Source: Octopus bimaculoides
Lineage: Eukaryota
Assembly: GCF_001194135.2 (NCBI RefSeq)
Contig: NC_068988.1
Coordinates: forward strand, 72,742,413 to 72,806,412
DNA: 64,000 bases
Direction: 5' to 3'
Shown: in pieces, positions 22,401-25,400 of the stretch
Numbering within the stretch: position 1 is the first letter of the stretch
How the letters are laid out: each line of letters begins with the position of its first letter
Notes under the pieces: model-generated
What the model saw: only the letters and a program-made list of their open reading frames with translations
Databases searched by the model: none
Told to the model about the DNA's origin: nothing
Made by a program: the position numbers and the translations under genes

Positions 22401-25400
22401 AGGAAATCTGAAAAGATTAAACAAAACCTTCAAATTACAAATAACAGAATGAGCACTAGTATCAGTACATGGAAAAATAAACGAAAAATGTGAATACTCA
22501 TCCACAACAGTTAAAAAATAATGGTTCTTTGACACTGAAGGTAGGGGTCCTTTAAAATCAACACTCAATCTTTCAAAAGCTTGAGTAGATTTAATTACTG
22601 ACGAAACAGGTTTTAGTAAAGCGAAGCTTTACATCATCTACAGAGTATGGTAAATTCTTAACTTTAATATAAGGAAACAATCATGTGATCCCAGGATGAC
22701 ACAGCGCTACATGAACATGGTACAGTTCATTATCAGTCATAGCTGCGCAATAGGTACATAATAAAGCATCAGATGCAACATTAAACTTGCCTTGGAGGTA
22801 AATGATATCAAATTTATACTGGGCTAATTCGATTCGCCAATGCATTATCTCTTCATTTTTAGGTTTATTGCGCTTTTGACAATTAAACATAAAAGCAACA
22901 CTGTTTTGATCAGTTATTAGTGTGAAGTTACGTCCAAGAAGAAAATGAGTCCATTTTCTCACAGATTCCACAATTGCTGTTGCCTCTTTTTCAATACAAG
23001 AACAACGACACTCACTTGGGTTGAGGGTTCTTGAAAAAAATGCAACTGGCTTTCCATTTTGGTGTAAAATGCCAGATATAGCTACCTCTCTAGCTTTCAT
23101 AAATCACTTTTAAGGTAGCTTTTGCTAAAGCATCTTGTAAAGTTTTTAAACTTGACAAGACTTGTTCACTCAAAGGAAAATATTTAGTATCAACTAACGG
23201 TTTTATCTTGTCAGAGAATCCATTTAGAATAATATGCAAATAGACCAACAATTCGACTCAGTGCTTCATGGGTACTAGGAATAGGTAGTTCTAATAAGGG
23301 TTTTACCCGGTCAGGGTCAGATTTCAAGTTACCATTTTGAATTTCATAGCTAAGCAATCGAATCAGTGAAGTGCTGTAAATTCTTTTGGCATCATTAAAA
23401 GTTAAATTATAGTCTTTAGCAGCTTGAAGAAAATGTTTTAAATTTTGATCCATGTTCTTCCTTCGATTTACCACACACAGTTATGTTGTCGATATATGCA
23501 AAAGTAGCTCTACAATTATGGCTTTCAATTATATTATCAATCACTCTCTGGAAACAGGGTACTGCATTTGTAAGTCTGAAAGCAATATGTTTGCTTTGAT
23601 ATAATTTTCCCTGTGCTTCGAAAGCCGTGTAAGGTCGATCTTCAACTGGAATCTCAACTAGATGATACACACTTTCGAGATCCAGTGTGCTAAAATAATT
23701 AAATTGAGCTATTTTTGTGACCATGTCATGCATATTTGGCAGTGGATATCCATCTAATTGCCTAAACTTATTTATAGTCTCACTATAATCAATACACAGT
23801 CTCTTGTGATGATTTTCTCCTGATATTACCAATACCTGGGCTCGCCAGGGAGAACACTGGGTTCAATTACCCCTTCTGCAGATCTTGGCTTATAGTATCA
23901 GCAATAAATTTTTCATTATTGGTGGACTATCTTCTCGATTTTGTAACTATGAGTTTACAGTCAGAGTTTAACTTTTCAAACAACCTTGGTGTAATGTCAC
24001 TTTTAATGCAATTTAGAGTTCCCAAATGTAATGGGGGCTTGTCGCTGTCAAAGGTAATCTGTACATGTTGATGCTGTTTTAAGAAATTTTGTCCTAAATT
24101 ATATCTACAAACAAATTATCAAGTACCACCAGCTTTACTTGCTCGTAAATTCTTCCTTGAAGTTCAATTGAACCCATACAATAACCGTTGTTTTGGGAAC
24201 GATTTCCATTGACAGCCATGTTAATTTCATTCCTTTCGGACTTCACCACCAATTTGTTTTTACTTTGCAAAGTCTTTGTTAATATGATTCATAGTAGAGC
24301 CGGTATCAATCAAAGCAAATGCTTTCGTGCCATCGACTGTTATTGTATAATTAACTTTAGTAGCAGCTCCACTTTGACATAAAACCACAGCGAAGTTGCC
24401 ATCATCAAGAGCTGCTGATGTCTTATCAAAATTTTTGCAGTTACTTGACAGCATTCTTTAGCAAACTGACCAAAATATCCACATTTGTAGGACTTGCTCC
24501 GCCTAGCGAGACACTTAAACCTCAGATGAAAATCATTAGATCCGCAAAAGGTGCAGGATTTTTGAGTTTGTTTTGTTGCTGCACAAGCTGTGTTTCCATC
24601 AAGAATTGAGATTTTGTTTTCATCACGTGGAATAAACGTTGACAAACAGCTTCCCTGGCTGTTTATAGCAGACTGGCTGCTATTATACACTTCAGAATTC
24701 CTTTGAGCAACTTCCAGCATGCAAGCTTGATTAAATATCGCTTCTAAAGTTATCAACACATCTTGAATATTTTCTAAAAATCTAAGGCAAGTTGAAGATG
24801 ACATTAATCCCAAGATAAATGCGTCACAAACAGCTTCATTTTTGTGAGTCTCAGCGTCCACTGCTCTGTATCTGCAATCTTTAGCTGGTCATTTCAGTTT
24901 CTGTAAATAGTCAACTGATTGACCTGGTTCTTGTTTACATGTCGTTAAGAAGTGTCTCGCAAAAATAATGTTCAAGGGTTTCATGTACAGTTGCTCCAGA
25001 GTTTGAATTTCTTCTACGTAATTCTCACATTCACTTATGAGTTCGTAAACGTCTTTATCTATGTGCGCTATTAAACACCTAAGCTTGCTTTCATCAGTGA
25101 TAGGCGGTTCAGCAGGAAATGATTCTAAAAAATTTATAAAATTTCTGAACCAATATTTCCATTCTTTTGAAGCTTGACTCAAACTTGGATCAGCGGTGAA
25201 CTAATTTGGTTTTATAAATTTGCTGTCCATTCTCTCTCTAGCTATTTTTAGTTGATTAAATTGTTATAAACCCAAAATGGAATGTCTAAATTTTAAAGGT
25301 TTAAATCAACTAAAAATACAACAATCTACATTACAAAGATTGCTAAATTATAAGCAAAACCAAACTTCAACACAATAACAGTTTTATGCAGCGAGTTGCT

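Follow-up and report, generated by a model that had tools for sequence, protein, structure and literature searches.

A putative self-primer in a chromodomain-less Ty3/gypsy clade, starting from a decayed element of Octopus bimaculoides

Introduction

The self-priming mechanism of the long terminal repeat (LTR) retrotransposon Tf1 is established (PMC7175516). Self-priming has further been predicted for Tj1 (PMC4600332), for the Tf1/sushi group, the plant Tcn1 clade and the copia TAR lineage with Houba and Osr-1 (PMC6317226, PMC6934838), and also for Tf2 and several fungal elements. A review mentions hairpin priming in some chromoviruses and nothing further. In this study, we analyzed a stretch of 64,000 nucleotides from Octopus bimaculoides (contig NC_068988.1), which as a whole is referred to as the window. 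It harbors an LTR retrotransposon of the Ty3/gypsy type, 4.2 kb in size, which is encoded on the window minus strand, such that the minus strand is the sense strand of the element. Beside its 5' LTR lie 18 nt that are complementary to a segment of the LTR itself and that we consider to be, probably, the primer-binding site (PBS) of a self-primed, Tf1-like Ty3/gypsy element.

Primer sites have received little space in surveys of LTR elements from molluscs, annelids and metazoans, which either ignore them or seek tRNA matches only and list the rest as 'no PBS' (e.g., PMC13524379, PMC6934838). A mollusc survey with the Mag, C-clade, Cigr-1 and MolGy clades is silent on primer sites (PMC6238403). 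No report of self-priming in an invertebrate or chromodomain-less gypsy element was found in the searchable full-text literature, which does not extend to Repbase notes and subscription papers.

The claim made here concerns the family and the clade. The window copy itself is a dead relic: its 5' and 3' LTRs are only ~82% identical, with indels, and the copy is therefore old and dead. The value of the locus lies in the clade-level pattern to which it leads.

Results and Discussion

The site beside the 5' LTR and its complement in the LTR

The arrangement at the 5' end of the element comprises the following features, given in window coordinates and in the reading direction of the element.

25261, minus strand: spacer A, between the terminal CA of the LTR and the site
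25260-25243, minus strand: putative primer-binding site, TTTAATCAACTAAAAATA, 1 nt past the end of the 5' LTR
25242-25231, minus strand: 12 nt, GCTAGAGAGAGA, between the site and the gag ATG at 25230
25318-25301, minus strand: putative self-primer arm in the 5' LTR, TATTTTTAGTTGATTTAA, 17/18 match to the site
21385-21368, minus strand: putative self-primer arm in the 3' LTR, TATTTTTAGTTGATTAAA, 18/18 complement of the site
25300-25261, minus strand: loop between arm and site, 40 nt, which holds an AACC...GGGTT pairing beside the arm and the conserved LTR terminus

A first-pass annotation, made from the sequence of the window, had described this geometry. Its coordinates, the degree of complementarity to both LTRs, the length of the loop and the position of the gag start behind the site were all reproduced. 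The single mismatch of the 5' LTR arm, which reads TTTAA where the 3' LTR arm has TTAAA, arose after insertion. The final six bases of the 3' LTR arm (21373-21368) are ATTAAA, a poly(A)-signal hexamer.

An inverted-repeat search finds the pair, along with an extension of 29 nt at 86% identity. When up to three mismatches are allowed, TTTAATCAACTAAAAATA occurs four times in the window, compared to 0.68 expected occurrences, and none of 100 shuffles reached this number. The perfect run anchored at the first base of the site against the 3' LTR of the element spans 18 nt, compared to 14 nt at most among 5000 dinucleotide-preserving shuffles.

A tRNA primer site of the TGG type is missing, as the first-pass annotation had stated: no TGG occurs among the 31 nt that separate the LTR end of the window element from its gag ATG, nor is there a TGG at the site position in any of the 14 related families introduced below. 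With ARAGORN, neither the window nor eight octopus and related loci yielded a tRNA. An Rfam scan (E<=1, 21000-26000) returned neither a tRNA nor any other family in the element, apart from one chance match to snoR160.

The interval between primer site and gag ATG (window 25231-25242) is formed by a (GA)n microsatellite, which differs in length among copies. In an Octopus vulgaris copy (L004, 6975-7000), the same interval measures 26 nt and is mostly (GA)n.

The same layout in 14 families

Relatives were found with RNase H and gag translations as queries, and their flanking DNA was retrieved; metagenome contigs were scanned with a gag alignment. The loci stem from Octopus vulgaris, Mytilus edulis, the damselfly Ischnura elegans and metagenomes including marine plankton. 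Within the larger clade defined by pol, the primer geometry was checked in the loci listed here.

In every family with a readable 5' end, a common layout is seen: an LTR ending in ...ACA, a spacer, the site, and gag. The spacer is a single A, or GT (2 nt) in Mytilus. The site starts with TTTAA or TTTAT and the arm ends in ...TTAAA or ...ATAAA, and the sequence in between is specific to the family. Altogether, 14 families reveal stems of 11-18 bp and loops of 37-76 nt, with gag identities to the window element down to 35%; among the relatives, the complementarity between site and arm amounts to 11-17 bp. Sites and their match to the arm are as follows.

L004, O. vulgaris: site TTTAATCGACTAAAAATA, 16/18 to its own 5' LTR arm, 18/18 to the L001 arm
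L008, young copy (LTRs 99.7% identical, target duplication CAGTA): site TTTATTTAACTTAATAA, 17/17
L013: site TTAATCAAACTCA, 13/13
L014: site TTTAACCAACTAA, 13/13
L016 (LTRs 100% identical): site TTTAACTAGCTAAA, 14/14
L019 family: site TTTAATGAACTG..., 12-16 bp
L035: site TTTATTTAACTG, 12/12
L036 family: site matching 15/15 to the arm kept in the L003 3' LTR
L037, Tara Oceans metagenome, gag 35% identical: site TTTATTTATCTTAAA, 15/15
L038, Mytilus edulis (LTRs 100% identical, target duplication TCTAT): site TTTATCAACTTAAATC, 16/16
L039, Ischnura elegans: site TTTATTCAGCAAGAAT, 16/16

In the young elements L008, L016 and L038, whose LTRs are 99.7-100% identical, the pairing is perfect. The first-pass annotation had attributed the arrangement to a mollusc lineage; this restriction had to be given up, as the same geometry is present in the damselfly and in the marine plankton metagenome.

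The U5 end of an LTR element is the point where minus-strand synthesis begins. In every family, the duplex begins 1 nt (2 nt in Mytilus) past the terminal CA of the LTR, and the LTR ends are fixed by LTR identity and by target duplications (GATAC in the window, CAGTA in L008, TCTAT in L038). Because of this constant start 1-2 nt past the LTR terminus, the duplex is tied to initiation rather than to another function of the RNA. A shared host primer is unlikely, since the sites differ between families and each of them matches its own LTR.

Some of the retrieved loci deviate from complete elements. L001 and L002, from O. sinensis and O. vulgaris, are 5'-truncated copies with a 3' LTR only. On the metagenome contigs L017, L024 and L025 (JGI) and at the locus L032, gag homologues (MDRLLRPER...) are preceded by neither an LTR nor a primer site; the three JGI contigs, which stem from different samples, have a conserved non-LTR sequence in common at this place. 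These gag genes could be domesticated or 5'-truncated. The otherwise young L038 of Mytilus edulis is lengthened by an internal duplication of ~664 bp (4684-5347 and 6090-6752, 97.6% identity). The 3' LTR of L039 (6598-6729) is the same as the 5' LTR over 132 nt, minus the final 12 nt (TATTTTACTACA), and there is no evident target duplication, which suggests a truncated or aberrant insertion.

Covariation between site and arm

For the covariation analysis, a gapless mini-alignment was built in which each family is represented by two pieces, its arm region and its LTR end with the site. The 12-bp core alignment holds 13 family representatives; Mytilus, the 14th family, was left out and checked alone (16/16).

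In the core, 96.8% of the cells are paired, versus 75.1% with shuffled partners, and none of 500 shuffles reached the observed value. Double-sided changes occur at eight of the twelve core pairs, and one position runs through A-U, G-C, C-G and U-A. The covariation score of 0.607 compares with 0.159 in the shuffles (0/500 reach the observed score). When the partner was shifted by 1-3 columns as a control, only 20-47% of the cells remained paired. One-sided changes to G-U are absent from all 156 core cells. An 18-bp version with 16 copies agrees with the result for the 12-bp core.

The anchored runs were assessed locus by locus. At 10 of 14 loci, no more than one of 2000 dinucleotide shuffles attained the observed perfect run (9-17 nt). 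The four other loci, namely the window copy (W, 5' LTR), L004, L023 and L020, are decayed copies with an early mismatch. Mismatch-tolerant scoring recovers W, L004 and L023; L020 stood outside the shuffle test.

For the octopus family, the ancestral arm is inferred to have been TATTTTTAGTCGATTAAA, as found in L001, and every base of it is complementary to the site of L004. A compensated pair distinguishes the window copy, in which the two LTR arms read TTGA and the site reads TCAA. As both window LTRs also have another diagnostic difference in common (TTCCA for TTCGA), this compensated state was most likely inherited and did not result from three separate decay events. Thus, the compensatory changes that the first-pass annotation expected of a self-primer are found at both levels, within the octopus family and across the 13 family representatives.

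These data also bear on the trivial explanation that the pair is a functionless inverted repeat, formed by chance in AT-rich DNA or as a by-product of CpG decay. The window indeed has a G+C content of 34.6%, and the sole difference between the window copy and the O. vulgaris copies concerns a CpG (TCGA to TTGA/TCAA). Against this stand the shuffle controls, the return of the pair at one and the same position in 14 families whose sequences differ, compensatory changes of the transversion type (e.g., C-G to G-C), and the perfect pairing in the young L008, L016 and L038. We regard a chance origin as effectively refuted.

A poly(A) hexamer in the duplex

In 10 of the 14 families, the last bases of the arm are exactly ATTAAA or AATAAA, or the arm spans AATAAA; the site of these families starts with the complement, TTTAAT or TTTATT. 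Four families have an arm ending in GTTAAA; in three of them, AATAAA is found in a longer loop. Moreover, the gag ATG lies 3-26 nt from the duplex. These features would also fit a duplex that is a regulatory or packaging structure of the RNA, which hides the 5' poly(A) hexamer, serves as a signal for dimerisation or encapsidation, or controls the translation of gag, while some other RNA acts as primer. HIV-1, for instance, occludes its 5' poly(A) signal in a hairpin.

Nevertheless, we consider such a replacement of the priming function unlikely. It gives no account of the constant offset of 1-2 nt from the LTR terminus, and the elements would be left with no primer site at all. A structural helix should tolerate G-U pairs, yet the core contains none. 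Furthermore, occlusion of the hexamer and priming are compatible, so that the former is perhaps an added function and not a rival. Along this line, one may speculate that the duplex masks a promoter-proximal poly(A) signal in addition to priming. Masking is conceivable for the 5' copy because the duplex forms only at the 5' end of the RNA.

Folding of the leader and the transcription start

In all 12 leaders tested, the minimum-energy fold closes the stem between arm and site (z -1.3 to -6.0). Folded alone, the loop of 9 of 14 families forms a hairpin that starts no more than 2 nt behind the arm, with weak energies of -1.4 to -13 kcal/mol; examples of such arm-adjacent pairings are AACC..GGTT, ACTAAT..ATTAGT and GCTTGG..CCAAGT.

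The first-pass annotation had pointed to a TATAAT 29-34 nt upstream of 25318 as support for a transcript that starts with the arm. This motif is present at that distance (25352-25347, minus strand), but the promoter argument built on it fell. TACAAT takes its place in the 3' LTR of the window element and in three (L001 3', L004 3', L005 5') of the four LTRs of other copies that were aligned; the L004 5' LTR has neither form of the motif. TATAAT is a private C-to-T change of the window 5' LTR and was rejected as the promoter of a start at 25318. A scan for sigma-70 promoters and terminators gave nothing useful and is irrelevant to a eukaryotic element.

The stretch from this motif to the arm tends to accumulate indels. 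Immediately ahead of the arm, the window 3' LTR lacks ~22 nt of the family consensus (21395-21415 region, to be compared with 25330-25350), and the L004 5' LTR has two other deletions between TACAAT and the arm.

Promoter-like motifs in other families point to different places. In L037, the LTR arm is preceded by a canonical TATATAAA with a TCAGA initiator at a distance of about 75-100 nt; in L023, TATTTAAA is found just 17 nt upstream of it. A variant of self-priming that differs from Tf1 can be considered. The start would be downstream of the 5' LTR arm, and the priming arm would come from the 3' LTR by cyclisation of the 5' and 3' ends, or in trans from a co-packaged second RNA. TATA-like motifs 10-24 nt upstream of the arm in some families (L023 as above, TTTTAAAT in L014) fit such a start inside or after the arm. 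In addition, since any poly(A) site is located behind it, the arm is certainly retained towards the 3' end of the RNA. On the other hand, the distance between arm and site is short and fairly constant (37-76 nt), which together with the abutting hairpin suggests a local fold; for an arm that acts in trans or over ~4 kb, conservation of this distance would be needless. The canonical TATA and initiator of L037, well upstream of the arm, likewise disagree with a start behind it. We consider this variant improbable and retain local, Tf1-like self-priming as our preferred interpretation.

Several points weigh against this interpretation. With TATAAT being private to one LTR and the motifs of L037 and L023 in conflict, the RNA may not begin with the arm, unlike the RNA of Tf1. 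The arm may sit inside the leader instead, in which case self-priming would still work, with a longer primer. The hairpin beside the arm is weak, and its resemblance to the U5-IR stem-loop, which Tf1 requires, as judged from predicted folds, is suggestive only. Pairing is missing in L005, in L031/L033 and in the L036 5' LTR, all of which are decayed or carry indels, and it is ambiguous in the more distant relative L040, due to a palindromic AATATT repeat. Finally, the arms were chosen by a search for the best complement, which introduces a selection bias; this bias is offset by the homologous position of the arms, their common ...TTAAA ending and the controls with slid partners.

L040, a Logan contig, was also considered as a transcript that might reveal the ends of the RNA. 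It was set aside, as no R sequence is common to both of its ends and its pairing is ambiguous.

A proposed model of self-priming

The model starts from the anatomy of the 5' end, the duplex fixed at the U5 boundary, its compensatory conservation and the lack of a tRNA-type site, all of which are observed. From these we infer the cleavage, the priming itself, the transfer homology, and that copy-back of the primer keeps the complementarity strict.

In the genomic RNA, the LTR arm located 40 nt upstream would fold back and pair with the site. The RNase H of the element, a domain of which is present in the window and in L008 (Pfam), or another nuclease would then cut at the 3' end of the arm (...UUAAA). 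The freed 3'-OH could be extended by the reverse transcriptase over the spacer A and the 40-nt loop, giving rise to a short minus-strand strong-stop DNA; clade-wide, this DNA would copy a loop of 37-76 nt. It would next transfer to the matching stretch just downstream of the 3' LTR arm. During plus-strand synthesis, the RNA primer would be copied back into the site, such that changes of the arm are carried over into the site. Such copy-back would account for strict Watson-Crick pairing between arm and site.

A more far-reaching reading can be offered only tentatively, and we hold it to be less likely than not. It states that a chromodomain-less animal clade of ~4-kb elements, spanning molluscs, insects and probably annelids, nematodes and cnidarians, might self-prime in a way that arose independently of the Tf1/sushi chromoviruses, that one and the same duplex might both prime and mask the 5' poly(A) signal, and that copy-back might explain the co-evolution of arm and site.

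Anatomy of the window element

The remaining features of the window copy are given below.

25516-25512, minus strand: target-site duplication GATAC, 5' side
25511-25262, minus strand: 5' LTR, 250 nt, TG...CA (TGTTGTG...TATAACA)
25230-24455, minus strand: gag remnant, beginning MDSKFIKP, with a degenerate CCHC knuckle; lower end coordinate approximate
24454-22332, minus strand: pol remnant, split over several frames with many short open reading frames (ORFs)
about 24454-24263, minus strand: protease, weak gag-asp_proteas match (Pfam)
23832-23419, minus strand: reverse transcriptase, RVT_1 (Pfam)
23100-22684, minus strand: RNase H, RT_RNaseH (Pfam)
22568-22332, minus strand: integrase core, rve (Pfam)
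21599-21587, minus strand: polypurine tract AAGGGGGGAAAAA, directly ahead of the 3' LTR
21586-21329, minus strand: 3' LTR, 258 nt, beginning TGTTGTG and ending TATAACA, preceded by the polypurine tract and followed by GATAC
21328-21324, minus strand: target-site duplication GATAC, 3' side

Owing to the 5-bp GATAC duplication and the polypurine tract, the LTR boundaries are fixed independently of the primer geometry. The element has the traits of Ty3/gypsy, namely the order protease, reverse transcriptase, RNase H, integrase (PR-RT-RH-IN), TG...CA termini, a short target duplication and a polypurine tract. The gag ORF is broken by in-frame stops at 25203-25201 and 24891-24889 and by a subsequent change of frame ahead of the protease. 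The closest proteins are found in Octopus vulgaris and O. sinensis; towards gag proteins of O. vulgaris, the identity is 80-83%. No second copy of the element was found within the window. The window contains two assembly gaps, N runs at 14102-14789 (688 bases) and 52599-52617 (19 bases).

Coding capacity and extent of the clade

Intact relatives are compact, with about 3.9-4.3 kb and LTRs of 127-299 bp, and encode gag-PR-RT-RH-IN in a single ORF of about 1190-1230 aa (e.g., P0075, P0181). A single gag-pol ORF is a trait of Tf1/sushi, but it recurs in many further gypsy clades. In the intact relative L008, the pol domains follow the order seen in the window element (Pfam), and among solved structures, Ty3 is the best match of an intact relative (E=2.4e-60). 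Together with the domain order in the window, this corroborates the assignment to Ty3/gypsy made in the first-pass annotation.

The first-pass annotation had also seen no chromodomain behind the integrase, and this observation extends to the relatives. None was found in the window ORFs, in the pol of L008 or in the C-terminal 195-202 aa of L008 and L037 (Pfam, E<=10), and the 60 best of the 376 matches between the clade profile and solved structures include no chromodomain protein.

With ~50% identity, 1789 relatives of pol were retrieved at E<=1e-60. Among the named sources are the nematode Trichuris, Mytilus, Biomphalaria, the sea anemone Actinostola, Ischnura and the lepidopteran Papilio. 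A scan of viral contigs with the pol profile found no relative.

Three observations on the coding regions were made in passing. In L008 (7001-10584), gag (271 aa) and pol (915 aa) lie in different frames. Separate frames were considered as a trait of the clade and rejected, as the 99%-identical P0075 is a single ORF of 1191 aa; the split in L008 is probably due to a one-base indel in spite of near-identical LTRs, a programmed frameshift being the alternative. The C-termini of the integrases (P0075, P0079-P0085, A6 alignment consensus), where chromoviruses have their chromodomain, consist of a low-complexity tail of ~100 aa, acidic/Ser-rich, followed by a conserved basic RRS(T)RxRKPPxR(F/Y). 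This motif (RRSxRxRKPPxR) might have a role in targeting or tethering. Motif C of the reverse transcriptase aligns with YLDD of the Ty3 enzyme (PDB 4OL8); of 41 intact gag-pol proteins, 24 have Y(L/I/V)DN at this place and 17 have YxDD. Among the families with YxDN are some whose LTRs are 99.7-100% identical, namely the L008 family and Mytilus L038; the second catalytic aspartate is thus lost in apparently young elements.

Implications

Our findings point to self-priming in a wide animal lineage. The families with the covarying putative self-primer belong to a clade with thousands of members. If the far-reaching reading given above is true, tRNA-independent priming is a common strategy in animal genomes and not an oddity of fungal and vertebrate chromoviruses. 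LTR-annotation pipelines would gain a rule for animal elements which seemingly have no primer site. Young, apparently intact elements, including the one from mussel, lend themselves as test systems. The question is raised whether self-priming is ancestral or convergent in Ty3/gypsy.

A further consequence concerns host defense. According to two reports, 3'-tRNA fragments target the tRNA primer site of tRNA-primed elements and repress them (PMC7472051; bioRxiv 10.64898/2026.01.22.698655). If the clade is indeed self-primed, it would lack this target.

Comparison with known systems

The closest parallels are Tf1 and Tf2 of Schizosaccharomyces pombe and Tj1 of S. japonicus. Like the clade that includes the octopus family (octopus clade for short), they have no tRNA site; the sequence adjacent to U5 is complementary to a segment of their own LTR further upstream, the arm is oriented with its 3' end towards the U5 boundary, and gag-pol forms a single ORF. 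The stem-loop beside the Tf1 duplex may have a counterpart in the weak hairpin predicted for the octopus clade. The duplex of Tf1 comprises 11 bp, compared to 11-18 bp in the octopus clade. Unlike Tf1, the octopus clade has no chromodomain, and its integrase carries the low-complexity tail with the short basic motif. The arm of Tf1 is the 5' end of the RNA, whereas that of the octopus clade may lie inside the leader. Further differences to Tf1 are the poly(A) hexamer at the arm end in most families, the animal hosts, and the size of the elements (~3.9-4.3 kb, LTRs of 127-299 bp). The likeness to Tf1 concerns the putative priming anatomy.

For the vertebrate Tf1/sushi group (sushi-ichi), plant Tcn1 and copia TAR, self-priming was predicted from the same complementarity between site and LTR that is seen in the octopus clade. 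However, Tf1/sushi and Tcn1 are chromoviruses and TAR belongs to copia, while the octopus clade is a chromodomain-less gypsy lineage.

Steamer and Steamer-like elements of bivalves (Mag lineage, C-clade) resemble the octopus clade in being compact Ty3/gypsy elements of molluscs with a single ORF and short LTRs; MchSLE1, for example, has 4758 bp and LTRs of 185 bp (PMC11046912). In contrast to the octopus clade, Steamer-like elements have a putative tRNA-Asn primer site.

Skipper of Dictyostelium (PMC5006619) and the bivalve TRIM (PMC6934838) share with the octopus clade the absence of a TGG-type site, and unconventional priming is suspected for them. No complementary LTR segment was found in Skipper and TRIM, whereas the octopus clade has one, which covaries with the site. 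Taken together, the mechanism is a familiar one; the lineage, its breadth and the coincidence with the poly(A) hexamer appear to be new.

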